Source: Selaginella moellendorffii (lineage: Eukaryota > Plantae > Lycopodiophyta). Taken from it: a stretch of 64,000 nucleotides of DNA. The stretch is from assembly GCF_000143415.4 (NCBI RefSeq), contig NW_003314269.1:3093060-3157059 (forward strand). The letters are read 5' to 3'. How positions within the stretch are numbered: position 1 is the first letter of the stretch; each line of letters begins with the position of its first letter. A program made the position numbers and the translations under genes. Below, one piece after another: positions 13,295-54,588 of the stretch. A model generated the notes under the pieces. It saw nothing but the letters and a program-made list of their open reading frames with translations. It was not told the origin of the DNA and ran no database searches.

Positions 13295-14423
13295 ATGGCA
13301 ATGGCGGAGCTTCTCAATCCCAAGAACACGGACGCCTTCCCTCTTGTAATTACGCCTGGTATGTTCCTGCATTCTCTTCTCGATCTGTATGCTCCCGTGT
13401 TTGGGCGCTTGTGCAGGAGCTTGCAGTGGAGACTTCGGCAATGATCTCGCAATTGGGATCCAGAAGCAAAAACTGTGGCTGGAAGGTCAACTCTTTGGGA
13501 GCCCTGGCGCAATTTTGTTCCGGGGATTCAGCGTGTCAAATGCGGAGGAATTTGCTCGAGTGGTGGAAGCGTTTGGATATGAGAGCATGGGTTACAGAGC
13601 TGGAGCTGCGACGAGGAAGCACCTTGTCGGGCCTGTCTACACAAACAATGCCCTCGACTCTGAAACCGAGCTTGGATTTCACAATGAAATGAGCTACGTA
13701 AGGTTTTCCCCATTTTTCATTCTAAGACTTCTTGTTTCTTGTTTCTTTGCCACAGCTTGCGGATTATCCCGACTTGGTCGTGTTTTTCTGCGAGGTTGCT
13801 CCACCGCCAAGCGCCGGCGGTGCCACCGGGATCGTCCAAGGCAAAGCCATATACAATAGGATCAAGAAAGAGTTTCCGGAGTTCACGGAAGATCTCGAGA
13901 ACAAAGGTCTCGTTTACTACAACTTACGCAGCGAGGAATCATGGAAAAAAGTCTACGAGACCAACGATAGAGCTGAGGCCGAAGCCAAGTAAGTGCAAAT
14001 CCCAACTGTTTCTACAATGATGTTTCGAATTCTAGAGCGCAAATTTTATCGAGAACGCTCCTCTGGCTCGACGATGGAGGAGTCAAAGAGATCCTGAGCA
14101 AAGGAACGAGGAAAGGGATTAGAGAGCTCGACAGTGGTGTTCACGGCAACAACAAGGTGTGGTTTAACAGTATTGGATCGGCCAAACCGTGGTTTCCCCA
14201 GTTCCAGTATTTCGAGTTTAGCGATGGAAGCAAGCTGCCAGCCAAAGCAGTCGAAGCGGCTCTAAAGATCATGGACGAAGAACAAGTCTCAGTTGAGTGG
14301 CAAGCCGGGGACATTGTTGTGATGAACAATCACTCGGTGCTCCACAAGAAACATGCCGCTGCTCCGAACACCCCGCGAAAGATTTTGGTGTCGATGCTCA
14401 AAACTTCCGGGGCGCCAGTGTGA
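13295..14423 (+). CDS. Clavaminate synthase-like / TauD-family Fe(II)/2-oxoglutarate dioxygenase (4 exons)
   Basis: GAILFRGF, GFHNEMSY (HxE iron ligands), VFFCEVAP..GGATGIV, WQAGDIVVMNNHSVLH..PRKILVSM. Exons join in frame. Confidence 0.88.
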
Positions 14424-14487
14424 TGAGATGCTTCGCTTGAGCTCATTGAGCTCGATCTCGAGAGAAAAGATAAATACCAGCCTTGTC

Positions 14488-42264: not shown

Positions 42265-42462
42265 CGCTCGAAGAACCCTAAAATTTCCACCTCCAGCGTG
42301 GATCTCATAGCGTAGAGTGACATGTGTCACGGTTGCGAGGCGAGCATGTGTCGTTGAAAGCATATACCTCGAGCAGGACGGGAATATACCTGCCATTACG
42401 AACGGTAAAAGGGCGGTATTTTTCCAGTGTTCTTCGCTAGGGTTTGGGCGTGATTTCTTGCC

Positions 42463-45403
42463 ATGAGCAGCGGCGGCGATCTCAATCAGGTCGTTGCGAG
42501 GGCGCAGCTGGTGCGCGAGAGCTTGATCAAGAGCCAGGGTATCACCGATCAAATGCTGCGCATCCTGGGATCGTTCGATCAGCGGCTCTCGGCGCTACAA
42601 ACGACAATGCGCCCCACTCAGGTTTGGATTGTGGTGTGAAGATTTTGCTGGATTTCTGCACGGATCGGTCGATTGTGTTGCTGGATGATGCATTGCTTGC
42701 ATTCTAGATTGGGGAAGAGAAAATTTTAAGGTAGATCTTTTTCTTTCTTTACAACAGGAGCGTCTCCAAGCAAGCCGTAGAAAGCGTCGGGACACTATAG
42801 ATTTTCTGTCCGACGATGATTTGGATGACCTTGACGAAGATACAAAGCCGGTATCTTTGGTCACGGGAAGCCATTTTTCAAAACTTGACTGCTCAAACAG
42901 GCAAGACGGAAGAGTAGTCTTGGCCTTTTTTCGGATGATGAGCTCGAGGATGGTGATGAAGAGGAGGAAGAGGAAGATCTGAGTGCTGAGAATTTCTTGG
43001 TACTTCTTCTTGGAGTTCTTCTGCCTGTTTAGTTTTCCTTGTGTGCTTCTTTAGTAAACTGTCCATTTTTACAGGTTCGAACGCATGCTATCAGGAACGT
43101 TCACGATAACATCGATCAAACCATCAATGCAGCAGAAACAATACTCACTCAATTCGATGTTTCTCGTCAGGTAAGAATTCACGTCGAGGTCGGAGGTATT
43201 ATACTTACGTCTTTCTCCATGCAGGTTGAGCCGAAAATCGTCGAGGGTCCACTAGATGACATATCCACATACCTGGGTGCTGTTGACCAGCTCAAGACCA
43301 ACGTCGATTTCTTCAATTTCCATCGGAGTTTCCAGACAAGCGACGCGGCTTTCAAGCATGCAAGGAATCTCCTTCTGAAAGCCATGACGAAACTGGAAGA
43401 CAAATTTAGAGAGCATCTAACACAACACAGGTAGGTACACAGGTATTTTACTGGATCTTTGTAAGCTGACAAGTAGCCAGTGCAGTAAGCCGGTTGATCC
43501 AGCAGAGTTGCTCAGAACTCTTCCAAGTTCCATGCGGCTGCAAAATGCGTTTGGAGCGTCTGGTGAGACTTTGATGATTGAGAAGGTTGTGCATGCAGGC
43601 TCCGGTGCGGATAGAGCGAAAGTGGAGGAGACTCTTCCATTAACTTTGCCAGTCGTTATTGCCCCAAAGGCCGTTCCTCAGCTGGCGGATATGGCCCAAA
43701 GAATGATCAATGCGAGCCATCACGAGCAGTGCATTGAAGCTTACAGGTTCATATCGCTACCATGCATATAAAGCTTGGACTTAGTGTTTCTATATTATTC
43801 CAGGGAAGTTAGATCTTCTTTCTTGGAGGACAGCCTAAGGAAGCTTGGAGTGGAGAGCATGACCAAGGAGGACGTGCAGAAAATGCAGTGGGAAGTTTTA
43901 GAGTCAAAAATTGGAATCTGGATTCAGTCTATGAAAGTCTCGGTGAGTTCGTTCTTTGCCATGGATTCGATCTTATGGCTCAACTTGGTGTCAGGTCAAA
44001 CTCCTGTTTGCTGCAGAACGTAAGACTTGTGACCAGGTTTTCTATCGTCTTGAACCGCACCGAGAAGAGTGCATAGTTGCGCTTCTGGAACCCAACTTTA
44101 ACCTGCTTGCGAGTTTCGGCGAGGCTGTGGCCAAAAGTAAGAGGTCCCCCGAAAAGCTTTTTGTTCTGCTTGACATGTATGAGACAATGCGAGACCTTTT
44201 ACCCGAGGTAACTTGATCTCATTTTTGCGTGCATTGGGATCACAACTCTACGTTTTGCAGATCGACATTATCTTTTCTGGAGAGGCAACGGCCCCATTAC
44301 GAGAGTCAGCAGCTCTGTTGACGAGCAAGCTATCTCTGGCTGCTCAAGAAACGTTCGATGAATTCCTCGAAGCTGTGGAGAAGGATGCGACGAAGACACC
44401 AGTACAAGATGGCACAGTGCATCCTCTTACTAGCTATGTTATCAACTACGTGAAGTTCCTCTTTGAGTAAGTTCAAGTATTTCCAATCCTTTTTTCATAG
44501 TTTGGATGGTTCCTAGTTACCAGAAGACTATAAGGCAGCTCTACAAGGAAAGCGATGATTTGGACAAGAAAGAGTCTCACATTGGACAGAACACACTTAA
44601 GATCATGGCGGCCTTGCAAACTAATCTCGATGTGAAAGCGAAACATTACAAGGACCCCGCGCTCTTGTCCCTTTTCCTTATGAACAACATCCACTACATT
44701 GTTCGCTCGGTTAAGAAGTAAGCAGCCAGTTTTAAAATTGACAATGGAGTAAGATATTTCCACAGGTCAGAAGCAAAAGATTTGCTGGGAGATGAGTGGA
44801 TTCAAATTCATCGCAGAATTGTCCAGCAACATGCGTCGGCATATCAGCGTACCTCTTGGGTGAAGGTCTGTATCAATTTATAAAACATGCTCTATAACTC
44901 CCTAAAGCAACATCTACAGGCCCTTCAATGCCTCACTGCCCAGGGACTCTCTTCATCGTCTCTGGGCGCTCCAGCCTCTAGTGCGGAAGCTGGCAGTGGA
45001 GTTTCTCGATCAATCTTGAAAGAAAGGCAAGGCAACGTTTTCACAAAACTTATGTTTTTGTTTTTCTTTTTTCCCAGGTTTAAAACTTTCAATCAACTCT
45101 TTGAAGATATGCATCAAAAACAATCACAATGGAGCATCCCAGACGCTGAGCTCCGTGAAGCTGTTCGACTTGCCGTGGCAGAGGTTTTGCTCCCAGCCTA
45201 TCGCAACTTCTTGAAGCGCTATGGGTGAGCAAGTGCTGTTTTAAAAACTGCTAGCTTCGAACGAACAATTTTCAAACAGCCCTGCGCTGGAAGGAGGAAA
45301 AAACCCTCACAAGTACATCAAGTACACACCCGAAGATTTGGAGAAATTGCTGGCAGATTTCTTCGAAGGAAAGGCTCGAAAATCTCAACTCTTTCAAAGC
45401 TAA
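42463..45403 (+). CDS. EXO70A1: Exocyst subunit EXO70A
   Basis: ILGSFDQRLSALQTTMRPTQ/VRTHAIR, SPEKLFVLLDMYE, DGTVHPLTSYVINYVKFL, FLMNNIHYIV, KYIKYTPEDLE. Confidence 0.95.
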
Positions 45404-45534
45404 AGTAAGTGGCATTTTATTTGGAAAAAAAAGCTTTTTGATTCAAAAGACGAACGAGTACAAAGCCTCTCCGTTATCGGTACTCCAAGAAAATTACGTA
45501 GCCTACATCAGCAGTTGGCGGCGACGTTTTGCTT

Positions 45535-46567
45535 CTAGTGCCCGACGCTGTGAACGCGAATGACACCGTCCGTGTAACCAGCAAACAACTTGGATCCATC
45601 CATACTCCAGTTCAGAGTGGTGCAGTAAGTCGGCTGCAGCAGAGACCACAAACACGACAATCGCTAAGAACAAAAACGAAAAAGAACCAAAAATCCAATT
45701 TTGATGACTGGTACGTACCTCTTTCTTGGACACCTGCTCGGGCTTGATCTCCTCGACAATGTTCTTGCTCTCCAGATCCCAGATCTTCACGCACTGCTGG
45801 GTCGCAGCGCAGAGCCAGTACCTGTTGGGGCTGAAGCACAGGCTATGGATGATATCCCCAGCGTCCAGCGAGTAGAGCCGCTTCCCCTCCGCCAAGTCCC
45901 ACAGCATGGCAACACCGTCCTTGCCACCGCTAGCGCACAGAGACCCATCCGGCGAGACCGTGACCGAGTTCACGTAGCCGGAGTGGCCGGCTAAGTTGGT
46001 CCGGAGCTTGCAGTTCGTCAGGTTCCACACCTTCACCATCTTGTCCCAGCCGCCGGAGACGATGATGGGATTCGTAGTCACCGGCGAGAAGCGGACGCAG
46101 CTCACCCATCCGGTATGAGAGTCCTGGTCCTGGATCGTATACTTGCACTCACCGAGCGTGTTCCAGAGCTTGATCGACTTGTCGCGCGAGCCCGAGACGA
46201 TCTGGCGGTTATCCGCGGAGAAAGCCACCGAGAGGACGTCCTTGGTGTGGCCGACAAAGCGCCGAGTGGTGTTGCCGTTGGCCAGGTCCCAGAGGCGGAG
46301 GGTGCCGTCCCAGGAGCCCGAGAGCGCAAACTGGCTATCCGAGGAGATGACCACGTCCTGGACGAAGTGGGCGTGGCCCGTGAGGCGGCGCTGTGGCAAG
46401 CCAAAGTCCTGCTCGGTGAGATCCTTGTGCTGCGTGTTCCACAGAAGGACCGACTTGTCGCGCGACGCCGAGAGGATGATGTCGCTGTTGTCCACGGGCG
46501 TGGCGATGGCGGTCACCCAGTCCGTGTGGCCTTCCATGCGGCCCTTGGAGACGAGAGAGTCCGTCAT
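45535..46567 (-). CDS. RACK1: Receptor for activated C kinase 1 (WD40, 40S ribosomal protein)
   Basis: [42 protein letters not shown]; single 3' intron. Confidence 0.97.
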
Positions 46568-47027: not shown

Positions 47028-48257
47028 TCAGACGAAACCAAGAGAGATTAATTTTTCGATTAATACTTCGTCGTCGTCATCGTCGTCGAGCTTCCTCTTC
47101 ATCTGCGGAAGCCCAGCGTCCTGGTTCTTTGCGAATCTCCCACGAATCCTTGGGCGACTGTCTGCTAGAGTCTTCCGACATGCATACTATACGTAAACAA
47201 AGACACAAACCATCAACATACAAGTGCAAACCCACAAACTCTAGCTTCAGTTCAAGTTCCAAACCTTGATCTTCTTGATGTAGTTCCTCTCCGATCGCTT
47301 CTGCCTGTACCTATCAATCCTCACCTTTCGCTCCTCGGGGCTGTAGCGGCCAACTTTCATTGCTGGATCGTCCGGAGTTCCAGGACTGGAAGCAGCAGCA
47401 GCAGCAGCGGTAGCTGCAGTGGCCGAGGTCGCAGCTGGAATGGAACTCACTGATCTGGAGATAGGTGACGAGAGAAATCCCAGTGGGAAATGTGGTGACA
47501 CGGGCAAATTCCCAGTGCTCAAGCTCCTGTAGAGTTGATGGTTCCAGGGATGAGGGTGGCGGTGCAAGAATGGTATAGCGGGATGAGGAGGGGGAAGAGC
47601 ATTGTGATGAAAGCTTAATGGAGATGGAAAATTATGGTGAATTACTGAGGAGTGTTCCATCATAATCGGAGGAAATTCCCTCATGAATTCTGTGATCGGA
47701 TCGTTCTCTTCACCTCCTGGTTCGCCTCCTGGTTCATAGCTAGAGGGCATGATTACTATTTGATCATGATCGTGATCACAAGATGGTGCATCATGAGATG
47801 GAGGAGGTGGTAGTGGTGCTGATGGGATTGATATTGTAGTGACACCAGCGAGATCTTCCAGAAGCCCAGATGAAGAAGAACTGCTGCCATGATCTTTAAA
47901 CTCCTGGATGCTAGTGCTAATGCAATCAAGATTATCCGTGGCATTGGTGGTGGTGATGGTGGTAGTGGCGGTTTGGAAGCTAGATCCCTCAAGTGCTAAA
48001 TCTGGTTGGATTGGGGGAGATTGCGATGTATTATCATCATCCTTGACAAGAATATGGAGATAGTGTGACAAGCTAGTCTGATCCTTTATATTCTCACCGC
48101 TAAAATCAAAGATCTCCTGCTCATGACCATCGCTGCTCTCTTCTGCAAGAGATCCCCCTCCTCCTCCTCCTCCTCTAATTTCACTGGTGGTGGGAACTAC
48201 ATTGCTTGCGGACGACTCGAGCAGCTCCTCGGGGCAGCAGCTCAGAGCTTCCCACAT
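47028..48257 (-). CDS. CCT-motif family protein (no B-box)
   Basis: VGRYSPEERKVRIDRYRQKRSERNYIKKIK|YACRKTLADSRPRIRGRFAKN. The 3' end is uncertain (a further exon is possible). Confidence 0.88.
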
Positions 48258-48518
48258 TTTTGCCCAGATACACTTTTTTCTCTGGCCAAAAGAACCTGGA
48301 GAAAAGGAGGCTTGAGGACCAAAGAAATTAGAGGGTTATCATAAGTAAGTCTATAATTAGTGGGCTTAAGTAACTTATTTCTCCTTTTTTGTGATTTACC
48401 CTTAAGTTATACTGTGTTTTAGAATTTTTTTTTTCTTACATGTTGGATCTTCAATTCACAATAGTTTGATTGTCTAACCAGTTAAGTTGGCTACCAAGAT
48501 TTTATAGAAAAGAGAAGT

Positions 48519-51500
48519 TTAGAAGGGAGTCTGGCATAGAGGACAAGTGGATTTGTGAGAGGATGAGAACCACTTGTAAAGACAAGCTCCATGGAACTTG
48601 TGGCGGCACGTCTTGCAGGCGAGCCGAGGAAGGCTATGGTTGGAGGTGTGGATGATGCTGTAGCAAATCGGACACTCCTCCACGCCATCAAACTCGCGAT
48701 CCACATTCTTCTTCCATATCAACACAGCCTCCGAGAGAGATCCATTCTGTTTATGATTCGCAAAGCAGTAAGTAACAAGATAGAAAGCAAAGAAAGAAAG
48801 AAAGGAAACCAAGCTTACCTGGTTTCTCAGGAAAGAAGCCATGGAGAGAATCCACTTGCGCATGCGTGTCTCGCTTATACCCAAGCGCTTGCCGCAATCG
48901 ACTTCCACGGCTTTGAGCGGATAGCAAGACGGCAACTTGATGGTCATGTCCATCGCAGCCTCCTCTTTCTTGTAAATCACAGTCACCTCTCGCAGCGACC
49001 TGTTTGCCTTGAAGATAAAGTTCTCTTCGGCAATGGCAGCAGCTTGCACCTAAAGAAAAAAGAAAGCCAGCTCGAGAAGCTCTAAAAAATAACACAGCGC
49101 ATTGTTTACCTGATTGAATTCCTCCGCTAAAAGTCGAGGACTACAGTAGTCAGCCGTGAAGGCTTCGATCGCAGCAACCGCTCCTTTCTCCCGCAGCCCC
49201 GCGAACCATGTCTGGACGCACGCCGGTAACACCCTCAGGATCAATCCATAGATCGCCCCGGCAATAACTGCGAAGTCGTTCGTGTTGCCACCACCCCATA
49301 AGAGGCCGTCCACTGCAAACGAAACAGACGCTGTGCCTGCTGATCGCTTGACTGCTTCAACCACCGGAGACAGCTGCAAATCTTCCTTTTTAACGTTGCG
49401 CTTCGTAGGGATATGTCGAAAGAGACAGTCGAGCAATGAGCTCGGCGTGTCGGAATCCTTGACATATTGAAGCAAGCGGTCTCTTGCCTCCGATGAAGTT
49501 CCCAGAACTTGGAGGTGCGTGAGAAAGAGTGACCAGGCAAGGAAGTAGTGTCCCTGCAAACGCGAGATTAGAGACATAGAAAACTGGAACGTCAGATAAG
49601 TCATACCAGGGAAGAAGTATCACCCCCGAATAACTTGCTCGCAGGAGTACCAAGTGTCGTTAGGAGCTCTGGCCGTATGAAATCAAAAGACGTATCGACC
49701 TGCAAATCCGAATCGCTCGGGTCATCTTCAGCCGACGTCGAAGATGAAACCACGGGCTTCCAAGAAACCGCTTGGTGCTGAAGTGGCTCGGTTGAGAGAA
49801 ACTTGTAGGCAACCCACTGTAACGAGGGAAGAGGATGCGGAGAAAATAAGAGCGCGTAGAGAGCACTGATGCCACCTGTTCCTAGTCCCCACAAGTCCGC
49901 AGCACGAACGGCCGTTTCACGAACTCTCACTGGAGCAGTGAGTAGTAACTCGGCAACCCGGTCCCAGAGGTACGAGCAGCGCGACCTTTGCAAAGATATA
50001 TCCTGTCTTAAATCGTCATTAGCACTAGCCAGTGCCTCGGCAAGTCCCGTCGCGAGAAAAACTCTGAAAACGTTGTCTACTGCTCTTGTCTCAAAGTTGG
50101 ACCACTGTGCTTCCTCCAAGCTTTCTAAGGATCTCGATCCAGCTGCCTTCTCGAAACTCTTCAAGGATTGAGTGAGTGACAGAATAGTTACTCCCGTGCC
50201 TAGAAGCTTCTCCGGCATATCGTTGTCCTCCTTCACGACTTTACTTTCTCCATCATCGGACATCATCGCTGCAACCGCTTCCGTATACTCTTCACTGTGA
50301 ACGACTGCATCCTCGATCCACTTCCGTAGCTGTCTGAGTATGAAGGTCCAATCCTCTAGGCCGAAGTTCTGCCAGCAGTACGCCACTGCTGGAGCAATTA
50401 GCCTTGCCAGCATAACTTGAACCGACGGATTCGAGGCTTCCTCTGCCGGCAAGTCCACAAAAATACCGGACTGCTTGCGGAATAAAGACAACAGCAAGTT
50501 CCTTTGCTGCTCGGATATATCTGCTTTCCCGGCCGAGAGTAATGCAGTCACACCACCTGTCGAATCTAGAGGAAAACAAGCCACGGCCACTTGCATCCAT
50601 TGCATGTTATCTAAGACATGAAAGTATGTTAAGTTAAATGAAACGATTGAAGTGACGAGCGAACCTGTAAAATTTGGAACTTCCAAGGCGAAGTTCAGCC
50701 AGTCGCAGATTTTCGATTCCATTTCGCTAGGAAAGAGAGTATCGTCGGACTTCCGTTTGATCAAGGACGGCATCATCGCTTCCAAAACATGTGGCAGAAA
50801 ACTTGAAGAGGATCCGGATAAGTACTTTGCAAACAACATCTCGCTTTCTTGTCTTCCGAAAGGCCCGTGATGGCCAATCAGTGCTCTCAAAACACCGAGA
50901 AGAGCACGTAAGTAAGGATCTCCCTCAGCAGCGCTGGGGAACAGTGTATCCAGAACGTTGTCCAGTAAAAGCCTGTGTCGACTTCCACCCTCGCTTCTTG
51001 CACAAGCCTGCAAGAAATTAAAAACAAAAGGTTGGCCATGCAAATCCGATGTGCAGAGGAGCTCCACAATAAGCCATGGCCTAAAACTGATATCCTCGCC
51101 CAAGAAAACTGTTTCTGGACCCAAACTGCGTGTAACCTCGAGAACTGTTGCTGAAATGCTGTGATGTTTCTTCGCCTACAATAGAGAGTTTCACAAGTTA
51201 AACGAAACAAAAGCAGCCTTACTTTTACCTCTAAGAGATGGCTGCGAGCTCCAGTACTCCAAAAGGGCCAATAATCAGCAGAAGCTAATAAACAATCCAA
51301 GGCACCTTGCCTATCCTCGGAGTTGCGACATGTCAAATGTAGCGTGTCCAGCACCCAATATGCGGCAGTGTTGTAAAATTCCTCTGGTTGGTCTTCCAAA
51401 AGCGTCTTTCTTACGCCTGACATCAGCTTCTCATACAGGCTCCGCCTCCCCGAGAATTCAGCGCATGATGTGAGTATGTCCTTCCGAGCTTGAAGCAAAG

Positions 51501-54500
51501 ACTGCGCAAGATTGTCATCGGTATAAGACGTAGTCGTCGTAAGACTTTCTTCATTGTCGTCATCTTCATCATCTGCCTTCAATACCGGTTGCACGTATGT
51601 CCAGTATAGGCAGAAAATAATCCCAAGACCTCCGATAACTAGCTCATTTATTCCGTCCACATATCTTAGAGAAGGCCAGCACGCAAGTAACGTATCGATA
51701 GAAGCCTTGGCTCTTTCTAGCGTCTCCGTAGAACCGTCCCCTTCTTCAATAGACGAAGGGGCAACAGAAACAGCCAATAAAATTGCCGCTTCGTTCTTAG
51801 ACTTATAAACCGCCAGAACCATACTCCTTAGAAATTCTTCCATAACTCTTATGACAGTTCCCTTTGACAAGATCGTTAAATAGCATCCTTCGCAAAGAAC
51901 TCCCTCCAGAGTTGTCCTGCACTTAGTAGGTAGCCTCAGAAAGCGCCAAAAGAAACACAAACGGAAAACCTTATCAGTTCGAATGCCGATGCCTGGAAAT
52001 TGGACATAGCGCCTAAGACGGCTTCGTCAATCTTCGGCGACTTCCATCTCTCCAACTTATAAGCCTCATTCTGTAAGCTGCACCGTGATTGCAGCGTCTT
52101 AATAAGGCTAGCCAAGATACTGATCCGAGAAGAGTCCTGTACGTCTGAAAAGTACGTAAGCACGTAATCCCATTCCCTGAAGAACATCTCATCTTCAAGA
52201 AACGTCAGAAGAACATAAACCTTGAGTTTGTTGAACTCCCCACTCACAGACCAAGGAAGCAGCTCATTTCGAAAAAGGTATTGTAGATGTTTTGACGAAA
52301 AAACATCTTCTACAGCCGAGCTCGTCAACTCTGTGTTGTCTCTGCCTTTCCAGTTCTGAGAAGCGAGTAAATCAAATACATGCAACCCATAGGTCCCTAC
52401 TAAACCCGTAAACAAATTCACAGCCTCGGGCTTTTCCTACAAAATGTAAGGGCTAGTCAGTGAAATTCTCAAACCGAAACAGAAGCATTACCGAGTTTTT
52501 TATAAAACCAAAGCCATCGGCAACAAATGGCTTAACAACCTTGTTGAAAATCTGGCTTCTCTTGTCGAGGTCCGAAAACGAGTCGAAAATAAGAAAAAAG
52601 CGTAGCACACGGTCATTGACTTGGCTGTTGTTCGCAAGAAATAATGCCGAACACTCCTCCCGAAGACAATCCCAGAACGCAGACAGCGAATTATTGTCCA
52701 GTGCACCCACAATGTCGACAATACATTTCCCTATCTCTTCAATAAACTTATCGGATAAAAGCAAAGAGGATGTCCTCTGGACGTTTGTCTGAACGTAAGA
52801 CTTCCACAAGATTCCAAATAAGACGCTTTCAGTGAAAAAAGGTTGCAACGATGAATCCTCTGCACCCAGGAACCTGTAAAATGGTAAGTGAAAAACTACA
52901 AGATTAATAAAAGTTTGTACCTTTTCTCGTGCGACAATAGCCACATAAAACACTCCTTGGTCGAATTAAGTAGGAGCATTCCCTGATCGAATGTCCAAGA
53001 GGCCTCCTCACATCCTTTCCAAAGATTAGTGAAAAAGTCGACAAAATATCCTTTCGGTGGAGATAGTGCAGCAGGAGGAATAAGTGAAAGAAGCGGCAGC
53101 AGACATGGATAAGAAACCTGTTGTGAACCATAGCATCCATGACGGAGAAAAGCCCAAAACCTTTGTTGCACAATTTTCCTGATAGAACTAGATTCCCAGG
53201 TCTGAGGAAACCGTTGTGTGAAAACTAGTATCAAGTCCCACATAGCCTGATGGCAGCCAGCGTCTTTCTCTTGAAATGTCCCAAGAATAAATTTCGCAGC
53301 CACTTCCATGTTGTCGTTTGGGAGAACGTGCGGGACGTGTTGTATGTAGACCTGTATAGCTTGATATACGGCCGAACGCGTACGAGATTTCCCAGATTTT
53401 GCCAAACCTTGAAACATTTTGTGATCTCGGAAAAGCTTAGCTGACGCCGTCACAAGCATTTCATTTGTGGTTGCTCTTTCCTCCCCGGTTTCCGATTCGA
53501 CCGAAGTGAAGAGAATGGTGAGAAGAGCCGATAAAGAAAGGAGGGTGGAAGATATAACCTGAAATAATATAAAGTGAAAAATGTGACGGCGAACACTAAA
53601 AAGATTACCCGTTCATACTTCTCAGCTGACTCTTCTGCTGGAGTTGATTTATCAGAAATCGTTTGCGGGGTCAATTTTAGATTATCGTCGATGTAAACAA
53701 GGATATCTGTCGCACAGAACGTCAGAGCTTCCAATCGTTTCTTTTGACCTGGAAAAGCAGCCTGGACAGTTGATTTGAGAGGAGCAACAACATATGAAAT
53801 ACACAACCTGAAGTGCTTGCTTAGCAGCGTCAGAAACCTCGAAGAACGGATCGAAATGTGACATCCACCAAGCTCCCATTAAGGACCGCAAATGGGGAGC
53901 CAGTGACCGCCTGGGAAAACAGCACTTTAAGCAACTTCTAGACCCAAGAACGAACAGTTAACATACCCAACCGTAGTTGCAAGACTGGTCATAGCCTTGT
54001 GTGTGGCCTCTCGAGTTTGACGACTGTTATCGAAAACTAGCTTCTTGTATTCAAAAACCTGAACTCAAAAAGATAAATCGATGTACTGCCAAAGAGAAAG
54101 GAAAGGATGGTGTGCATACCCACGATGGTAGAACGGGTAAAACTTCCGCGGCTGGACGCTCCTGGAAAAATGCAGTCAAAGCAGCGAGAGCTTTTATCTG
54201 TTTGAAAAAGGAAAAAAAAGCAAGAGGAATATCAGAACTAGACACTACGTAAAGGGCAACGTACCTTTGTTATTGGATCCTTCTTCGACAATCTCCGCAA
54301 ATTCGCAGCCGTTTCTCCATCGATACTCTACCACACCACACAATCCCTCACAATTACACCGAAATAACACCACATTCCATACCGCATACGTCTCCTCACT
54401 CGGCCCAGCGTCAATCCGCGCGCTGCCGACATATCCTCCAAATCCAGCGCTCGCATTGCCCTGCGACAGCGCCGCCGCCAAGCTGCGCACAGGAATTCCA

Positions 54501-54588
54501 TTAAATCCACAGCCGATCGAGCGACGCATTACCTGCTGCTGGACGGCCGCCCCTTGCCGCGAGCGCCATCGCCCTTCGTCCTCCCCAT
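48519..54588 (-). CDS. LTN1: E3 ubiquitin ligase listerin (ribosome quality control)
   Basis: N-terminal GRPSSSSLAAAL..GFGGYVG, HEAT-like body, and C-terminal [49 protein letters not shown]. Confidence 0.95.

Follow-up and report, generated by a model that had tools for sequence, protein, structure and literature searches.

An apparently optional acidic mini-exon, and a putative second one, in the first intron of a weakly expressed EXO70A gene of Selaginella moellendorffii

Can a plant EXO70A gene splice additional residues into the helix by which its product joins the exocyst? The question is raised by a Selaginella moellendorffii gene in the 64,000-nucleotide stretch of DNA analyzed here (the window), the first intron of which contains two AG/GT-bounded segments that can be read in frame with the exons on either side. 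Among plant EXO70 proteins, EXO70A/EXO70.1 is the conserved one with a housekeeping role that stays bound to the exocyst, and a negatively charged N-terminal helix suffices to release EXO70 from EXO84 and from the exocyst (PMC12626893). An optional acidic insertion in this helix of a lycophyte EXO70A paralogue would be a natural experiment on this helix-charge model, and also a rare plant case of a cassette exon that alters the protein in a central trafficking gene.

The gene (positions 42463 to 45403, + strand) is of the EXO70A/EXO70.1 type as judged by its domains, a conserved motif, best hits, and gene structure. Twelve homology-supported exons were delimited by tblastn and splice-site mapping, the whole gene length being aligned by tblastn to orchid EXO70A, and Pfam matched Exo70_N (PF20669, E 3e-13) and Exo70_C (PF03081, E 1e-17 to 3e-18) in different exons. 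These data agree with the identity proposed in a preliminary description of the locus. The motif ...ILGSFD.RLS.L...MRPTQ followed by [VI]RTHA.R is present in this multi-exon gene, with the assignment to the A (EXO70.1) clade being one of best hits plus gene structure; EXO70.2 genes are mostly without introns (bioRxiv 10.64898/2026.01.28.702365). In an exact look-up, the exon 1 open reading frame (ORF) and a 241-residue ORF of the window were both absent from the record. A single-exon DnaJ gene of the same window is already on record. The features of the EXO70A gene are as follows.

42463-42621, + strand: EXO70A exon 1 (translation; tblastn to orchid EXO70A; 149 homologues; in both RNA contigs)
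42622-43074, + strand: whole interval, a single intron of 453 nt in the skipping isoform (joint 42621 to 43075 in one RNA contig)
42622-42757, + strand: intron 1a (136 nt; T 0.39, GC 0.40, intron-like; joint in one RNA contig)
42758-42850, + strand: mini-exon EA (93 nt, 31 codons, phase 0-0; start seen spliced to exon 1)
42851-42900, + strand: putative intron 1b (50 nt, gtatct...aaacag; length inside the 48- to 57-nt class)
42901-42999, + strand: putative mini-exon EB (99 nt, 33 codons, phase 0-0; EA-like peptide, exon-like composition)
43000-43074, + strand: putative intron 1c (75 nt, T 0.49)
43075-43170, + strand: EXO70A exon 2 (translation, tblastn, RNA contig)
43225-45403, + strand: EXO70A exons 3 to 12 (tblastn, splice-site mapping, Pfam)
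43225-43430, 43486-43746, 43804-43942, 43995-44207, and 44261-44466, + strand: exons 3 to 7
44517-44717, 44766-44865, 44920-45026, 45078-45224, and 45280-45403 (stop included), + strand: exons 8 to 12

Exon 1 comprises 53 codons and ends in phase 0 after ...MRPTQ (CAG/gt), and exon 2 comprises 32, beginning V-R-T-H-A-I-R. The ten other introns of the gene measure 48 to 57 nt each, one of them being GC-AG. Within the first intron, the coordinates and translations of the two phase-0 segments were exactly as previously claimed. Both EA and EB are stop-free, are multiples of 3, and have canonical splice sites on both sides (EA, acceptor ...ctttacaacag/G and donor CCG/gtatct; EB, acceptor ...ctcaaacag/G and donor TTG/gtactt), and each can be skipped in frame; retention of intron 1b leads to a frameshift. 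Their composition is exon-like (T 0.22 to 0.25, GC 0.47 to 0.49), with the three flanks being intron-like (T 0.30 to 0.49, GC 0.37 to 0.42).

The EA peptide consists, in this order, of a basic cluster, Thr, I-D-F-L, S-D-D-D-L-D-D-L, and an acidic tail (net charge -4), and that of EB consists of R-R-K-S-S, L-G-L-F, S-D-D-E-L-E-D, and a long Glu run (net charge -11). From these sequences, the insert would be a predicted disordered loop made of two diverged copies of one module, with a net charge of about -15; in each copy of this putative module, a basic cluster bearing Ser/Thr is followed by a hydrophobic pair and then by S-D-D-[DE]-L-[DE]-D, with acidic residues forming the tail. GA occupies codon positions 1 and 2 in 11 codons of EA and 14 of EB, with third positions varying. 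The RRxS/T kinase sites attributed to the segments are found in the EA/EB peptides, and, again as sequence matches, S-D-D-D in EA and S-D-D-E in EB conform to the CK2 consensus S/T-x-x-[D/E] in acidic context.

Two further likenesses put forward in the preliminary description were not supported by the sequence. The LFa motif of FAM21 consists of L-F, 3 to 10 acidic residues, and again L-F; EB has L-F, 21 residues, and F-L, and EA has no second pair. FAM21/WASH is not known from plants. The ATG8-interacting motif (AIM/LIR) has the core [W/F/Y]-x-x-[L/I/V] preceded by acidic residues (consensus, PMC4091244), and this core is absent at either Phe, there being no L/I/V at +3 in F-L-S-D of EA, in F-S-D-D of EB, or in the terminal F-L of EB followed by V-R of exon 2.

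Two of the relevant splice joints were found in RNA-derived contigs, one low-depth contig each and from different runs. In the inclusion contig (161 nt, depth 3), exon 1 is joined to EA (42621 to 42758; 136 nt removed, GT..AG), and the sequence continues ~56 to 59 nt into EA with 0 mismatches to the window. In the skipping contig (452 nt, depth 5), exon 1 is joined to exon 2 (42621 to 43075; all 453 nt removed, GT..AG) and the sequence runs on through the exon 2-exon 3 joint (43170 to 43225). The joints share only 4 to 6 letters, so the contigs are not chimeras of de Bruijn assembly. With both splice forms present in RNA contigs, EA appears to be a genuine exon whose use is optional, on RNA evidence that is thin. 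EB, the use of the EA donor, the EA-EB joint (42850/42901), and the EB-exon 2 joint (42999/43075) were not seen in the RNA reads and contigs examined. The alternative splicing originally proposed is supported in RNA at the junctions 42621/42758 and 42621/43075, by one contig each; we infer that EB is an exon as well and that the full insert has 64 residues.

Over 447 positions, the skipping contig shows 3 differences from the window, one of them an Ala-to-Thr change, and it probably represents the other haplotype; two alleles may be represented by the two contigs. Reads from this EXO70A gene were almost absent from two deep raw RNA-seq runs, and the depth of a second EXO70A paralogue in the same contig sets was 15 to 140 times higher. 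The gene at 42463 to 45403 is the minor, weakly expressed one of two expressed EXO70A paralogues. Four A-clade EXO70 models have been reported in S. moellendorffii, the sequenced individual being heterozygous with most genes present as two close copies (PMC3399122). The four models, probably corresponding to two loci in two haplotypes each, leave room for a diverging paralogue.

How readily could such segments arise by chance? Two compatible AG/GT-bounded, stop-free cassettes, each of at least 90 nt, occurred in 7.8 to 8.1% of dinucleotide shuffles of the 453 nt, and the same geometry occurred in 27% of real 453-nt intervals of the surrounding gene-dense region; cassette geometry by itself is weak evidence. 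The local score of the EA peptide against that of EB was 50 (BLOSUM62), compared to 24.3 +/- 4.7 in shuffles that preserved composition, with 1 of 5000 equaling it (p about 2e-4). Two cassettes with peptide similarity at this level appeared in 0 of 3000 shuffles. At the DNA level, no similarity between EA and EB was detectable, and TRF found no tandem repeat in either segment. An ordered peptide motif shared without DNA similarity implies selection on the protein. Intron size, composition, and peptide motif, taken together as features of the sequence, make a chance origin unlikely.

As had been claimed, the residues on either side of the first intron directly adjoin each other in other plants. 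Across 24 EXO70A N-termini, the consensus is continuous over the exon 1/exon 2 junction, and a real insert at this point was present in 0 of 119 full-length top hits (seed-plant EXO70A). On the gene strand of three non-seed-plant loci (L001, L002/L003, and L004), whose first introns measure about 2.0, 0.6, and 1.5 kb, respectively, EA and EB had no homologue, and no relatives were detected in annotated proteins or in JGI metagenome contigs, for which EA alone is too short a query. An exon 1 search of representatives recovered mostly genomic exon 1 read-through ORFs of other plants. A search with the 58-residue exon 1 ORF gave no candidate; a profile of scaffold plus exons, used to look for lycophyte orthologues, gave angiosperms only among the best 120, and a profile on an unrelated scaffold gave no match. 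The supplements of two exocyst papers contained no Selaginella sequences. Two proteins with tiny introns, P0126 and P0137, were considered as relatives and rejected as mis-modelled seed-plant proteins.

The insertion point is within the N-terminal helix through which EXO70 is docked in the exocyst (PMC12626893), as the preliminary description had placed it. In an AF2 model of the orchid EXO70A N-terminus, residues 3 to 92 form one helix with pLDDT above 90; solved structures begin at residue 75 or later, outside the insertion site. Exon 1 encodes the N-terminal half of this CorEx helix with Arg13, Arg18, Arg41, and Arg50, and exon 2 encodes the second half with Arg55 and Arg60, all six thus being kept. 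On the model, the insert would split the helix between Arg50 and Arg55. MpExo70I in which the six Arg were replaced by Glu no longer bound Exo84, localised to the cell plate, or complemented, whereas replacement by Ala or Lys caused none of these losses (PMC12626893).

The reading that we prefer, and in which we place about half of our confidence, is that of a low-expressed EXO70A paralogue with two frame-neutral exons that are spliced alternatively and encode an acidic insert that would weaken the pairing with EXO84. Two small frame-neutral coding exons would have arisen within the ancient phase-0 first intron. Splicing of exon 1 to exon 2 would give the canonical protein, and inclusion of EA, then of EB across the 50-nt intron, would give isoforms with 31 or 64 additional residues. 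By analogy with the Marchantia charge inversion, a helix that is looped out and strongly negative would pair less well with EXO84, the inclusion isoform would then be an EXO70 that is free or targeted differently, and the skipping isoform would be the exocyst-competent one; phosphorylation may deepen the negative charge of the insert. That one or both mini-exons, acidic and open to phosphorylation, constitute a splice-controlled electrostatic switch, toggling EXO70A between an exocyst-bound and a free, "escaped" form, is a further step made by analogy, which we consider quite improbable. Should the inclusion form turn out to be noise at trace level, in a paralogue undergoing decay, the observation would be unremarkable.

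Under such noise, EA, possibly together with EB, would be a cryptic pseudo-exon used now and then in a weakly expressed and weakly constrained paralogue of which only the canonical form is functional. This would be consistent with an inclusion joint seen once at depth 3, with a gene that yields hardly any reads in two deep RNA runs beside a paralogue 15 to 140 times deeper in the contig sets, with EA/EB conservation not being found across species (three loci, metagenome contigs), and with AG/GT stop-free cassettes being frequent by chance; a 64-residue insert would, moreover, break a continuous conserved helix and could be deleterious. Noise is nevertheless a somewhat unlikely explanation, as the ordered motif shared without DNA similarity points to selection at the protein level, the varying third positions still keep Asp/Glu codons, and both segments are frame-neutral and exon-like with an intron of modal size between them. 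A less radical alternative limits the doubt to EB, which would be a chance open frame, with EA spliced directly to exon 2 and 31 residues added in frame. EB has no RNA and a weaker acceptor pyrimidine tract, and EA alone preserves the frame; however, the module order of EB is that of EA, its composition is exon-like, it has G at donor position -1 and acceptor position +1, and the 50-nt spacing fits the intron size class, making EA as the sole exon unlikely.

It is also conceivable that the haplotype of the window always includes EA, perhaps with EB, and that the other one lacks or always skips both. The 3 differences in 447 positions of the skipping contig, as opposed to the identity of the inclusion contig over 161 nt, would fit with such an allele-specific structure, as would the heterozygosity of the sequenced S. 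moellendorffii, with most genes as two close copies (PMC3399122). However, the sampling is tiny, one contig each, nothing indicates a different intron in the other allele, and intron definition in short-intron genomes would favour inclusion wherever the sites are kept; we regard a fixed difference between alleles as quite improbable. An intronic C/D-box snoRNA, with the open frames being incidental, was suggested by sub-threshold Rfam matches to archaeal C/D sRNAs at 42931 to 42984 (19.7 bits, E 0.08). This score is far under the gathering score of 42, a eukaryotic C/D snoRNA would need more than the 54-nt span, and the boxes driving the match (UGAUGA, CUGA) are Asp/Glu codons; a terminal stem or inverted repeat is absent, and the exon 1-EA splice would be left unexplained. 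Membership in this RNA class was rejected on the score and the missing stem, and we deem a snoRNA extremely improbable.

Like land-plant EXO70A/EXO70.1 (Arabidopsis EXO70A1, MpExo70I), the gene encodes Exo70_N, Exo70_C, and six N-terminal Arg, and it shares with land-plant EXO70A the conserved phase-0 intron directly after ...MRPTQ. No residues separate ...MRPTQ from [VI]RTHA... in the land-plant EXO70A examined, which comprised some 120 proteins from seed plants as well as three loci from non-seed plants; the S. moellendorffii gene, a minor paralogue, differs from these in that an acidic mini-exon can be spliced in at this point. EB gave a weak compositional Pfam match to positions 16 to 38 of papillomavirus E7 (E 0.096, below threshold), and the hydrophobic pair, S-D-D-[DE], and acidic run of EA and EB recall S-S-E-E-E-D-E of E7 CR2 and fit S-x-x-[DE], a short-motif resemblance and not homology. 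EA and EB may also resemble phospho-regulated SUMO-interaction modules.

In plants, exon skipping is a minority mode of alternative splicing. In metazoans, Exo70 (EXOC7) has ESRP1-regulated epithelial and mesenchymal isoforms, and such in-frame splice variants provide a precedent for an EXO70 diversified by alternative splicing, albeit in another lineage, at another position (not the CorEx helix), and with unrelated sequence. A passage of PMC3399122, citing Dellago 2011, notes the alternative splicing of metazoan Exo70. For Exo70II, De la Concepcion et al. (2025, PMC12626893) describe "complex escape" by way of negative charge in the N-terminal helix, and the likeness to the present case is that negative charge would be put into the same helix, amid the Arg residues that cannot be inverted to Glu without loss of Exo84 binding. 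In Exo70II, the charge shift arose by point substitutions fixed in separate paralogues, whereas S. moellendorffii EXO70A would have a putative optional, disordered insert of 31 to 64 residues in an Exo70I-type helix. If the switch were true, one gene would reach an outcome otherwise fixed as charge changes in separate EXO70 paralogues.

The window carries an EXO70A-type gene of 12 exons on the + strand (ATG at 42463, stop at 45401-45403), which was mapped by tblastn with orchid EXO70A and by reading of the splice sites, the Pfam domains Exo70_N and Exo70_C being matched by separate exons. The interval of 453 nt between exons 1 and 2 holds two candidate mini-exons, EA and EB. Their coordinates, AG/GT bounds, phase and open frames were re-read in the sequence, in exact agreement with the preliminary description. 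The features are as follows.

42463-42621, + strand: EXO70A exon 1, ending in phase 0 after ...MRPTQ
42758-42850, + strand: EA, 93 nt, phase 0, without stop, AG/GT-bounded
42901-42999, + strand: EB, 99 nt, phase 0, without stop, AG/GT-bounded
43075-43170, + strand: EXO70A exon 2, beginning V-R-T-H-A-I-R
45027-45077, + strand: EXO70A intron 10/11, GC-AG (AAG/gcaagg ... cccag/G), 51 nt; no GT donor here keeps the frame

The region is gene-dense. EXO70A (ATG 42463) and a universal-stress-protein-like gene of the - strand (ATG 42270) are arranged head-to-head, and with start codons about 190 nt apart the promoter region must be common to both and both 5′ UTRs very short. At the other end, EXO70A lies tail-to-tail with RACK1, a gene of two exons that runs from 46567 to about 45535 on the - strand, the convergent stop codons being about 130 nt apart (region 45401-45537), so that the 3′ UTRs probably overlap. 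EXO70A is also neighbored by a single-exon DnaJ gene whose exact record match assigns the window to scaffold GL377573.1 of GCA_000143415.2, an assembly of the Selaginella moellendorffii genome. In the annotated record L007, which overlaps the window, positions 13536-21059 (window about 47065-54588, - strand) have a GenBank product of 2092 residues with Listerin (Ltn1) domains plus a CCT domain, apparently a gene-model fusion of two neighboring genes.

Four RNA runs were compared with window positions 42401-43600. In X1 (Logan contigs, organism A), one contig of 452 nt (depth 5) fell on 42477-42618, 43072-43167, and 43222-43430, joining exon 1 directly to exon 2 with removal of 453 nt (GT..AG) and continuing into exon 3. 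In X2 (Logan contigs, labelled organism B), one contig of 161 nt (depth 3) fell on 42517-42618 and 42755-42813 with 0 mismatches, joining exon 1 to EA with removal of an intron of exactly 136 nt (GT..AG). That just 4 to 6 letters are in common at the joints indicates real RNA molecules rather than assembly chimeras. EA is thus a real exon that some transcripts include and others skip, each form having been seen once. The EA donor, EB, and the EB-exon 2 joint had no coverage in these runs, and EB is a predicted exon. The alternatively spliced insert of the preliminary description therefore holds for EA inclusion and for full skipping, one contig each (junctions 42621/42758 and 42621/43075), the part involving EB having no RNA coverage: neither 42850/42901 nor 42999/43075 was seen in the four runs. 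Three positions, one of them an Ala-to-Thr change, distinguish the X1 contig from the window, so that it probably represents the other haplotype, while the X2 contig matches the window throughout; the splicing may consequently be allele specific rather than alternative within one allele.

X2, despite its label, contains contigs identical to the S. moellendorffii EXO70A locus and to its paralogue, suggesting that the run was mislabelled, that the sample was mixed, or that the taxon is nearly identical; its study also includes a run labelled organism A.

The raw RNA-seq runs X13 and X14, from each of which about 1.4 Gb was read, contained almost nothing from the window's EXO70A gene. Each gave ~80 reads on a conserved patch of 33 nt (42560-42592) at 90 to 95% identity, with both sides unlike the window, and contigs matching the same patch had depths of 83 (X1) and 427 (X2) versus 5 and 3 for the window's gene. 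The source of these reads and deep contigs is a second, much more highly expressed S. moellendorffii EXO70A paralogue, which reads ...SQSVTQSVM...LESAMRPTQ and whose consensus ends one base, a C, past the Gln codon. The window's gene is hence the minor paralogue, which fits the four A-clade EXO70 models in the heterozygous S. moellendorffii genome (PMC3399122), probably two loci times two haplotypes.

Cassette geometry alone is not beyond chance: two compatible AG/GT stop-free cassettes, each of at least 90 nt, occur in ~8% of dinucleotide shuffles of the 453-nt interval and in 27% of genuine stretches of the same length from the gene-dense region. The ten other introns of EXO70A all measure 48 to 57 nt, and a first intron of 453 nt would exceed each of them eightfold; counting EA and EB as exons divides it into pieces of 136, 50, and 75 nt. 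EA and EB are exon-like in composition (T, 0.22 to 0.25; GC, 0.47 to 0.49) and their three flanks intron-like (T, 0.30 to 0.49; GC, 0.37 to 0.42). In both peptides, a basic cluster containing Ser/Thr is followed by two hydrophobic residues, then by S-D-D-[DE]-L-[DE]-D, and last by an acidic tail. Aligned locally, they score 50, versus 24.3 ± 4.7 in composition-preserving shuffles (1/5000), and 0/3000 shuffled introns gave two cassettes as alike, nulls that are generous to the exon reading since shuffling destroys local purine-rich tracts. No DNA similarity was found between EA and EB, nor any repeat by TRF; 11 codons of EA and 14 of EB have GA at positions 1-2, with variable third positions. 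Combined, these features are what one would expect if an exon had been duplicated long ago and the copies had since been constrained at the protein level. A C/D-box sRNA in EB (42931-42984) was rejected, the Rfam archaeal models reaching 19.7 bits where the gathering score is 42; these matches stem from Asp/Glu codons spelling UGAUGA plus one CUGA.

The flanking residues are contiguous in other plants, as had been proposed: a consensus built from 24 EXO70A N-termini shows no break at the exon 1/exon 2 junction, and among 119 full-length top hits the one insert at this point, of 18 residues, is probably a retained intron. The first introns of the three closest reachable genomic relatives (L001, L002/L003, and L004; about 2.0, 0.6, and 1.5 kb) contain nothing homologous to EA or EB on the gene strand, and a metagenome scan for EA/EB relatives found nothing. 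L002 and L003 come from JGI metagenomes, probably of peat-moss samples. The suggested lineage specificity thus amounts to absence from the relatives sampled, a set outside which lie the other haplotype, the second EXO70A locus, and every other Selaginella.

Concerning linear motifs, the proposed RRxS/T kinase-type sites are present in the insert as sequence matches, as are S-D-D-[DE] phospho-sites. The suggested likeness to ATG8-interacting motifs is not borne out, the canonical core [W/F/Y]xx[L/I/V] being absent from EA and EB, nor is the FAM21 LFa pattern, EB having LF, 21 residues, and FL. The sole signal from the family library was a compositional resemblance of EB, below threshold, to the papillomavirus E7 CK2-site region. 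The insert may resemble CK2-regulated SUMO-interaction modules, and its R-R-K-R-R cluster may be NLS-like.

AF2 predicted the first 200 residues of orchid EXO70A (24 sequences) as one continuous helix over residues 3-92 (pLDDT above 90), which puts the exon 1/exon 2 junction (residues 53/54) mid-helix, just past the conserved Pro51. This site is missing from solved EXO70 structures, which begin near residue 75. The N-terminal helix of EXO70 decides exocyst association (De la Concepcion et al. 2025, PMC12626893), and these two lines support the preliminary placement of the insert in the exocyst-docking region. EA and EB carry net charges of -4 and -11, respectively, not counting phosphorylation at their S-D-D-[DE] and RRxS/T sites. 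Going beyond the sequence facts and published experiments, our best inference is that inclusion would loop out and acidify the CorEx helix, the N-terminal helix docking EXO70 in the exocyst, and so weaken EXO84 pairing, with skipping giving canonical EXO70A. In MpExo70I, changing Arg13, 18, 41, 50, 55, and 60 to Glu abolished Exo84 binding, cell-plate localization, and complementation, and changing the same six to Ala or Lys caused no such loss (PMC12626893); all six are kept in the window's gene, with the insertion site between Arg50 and Arg55.
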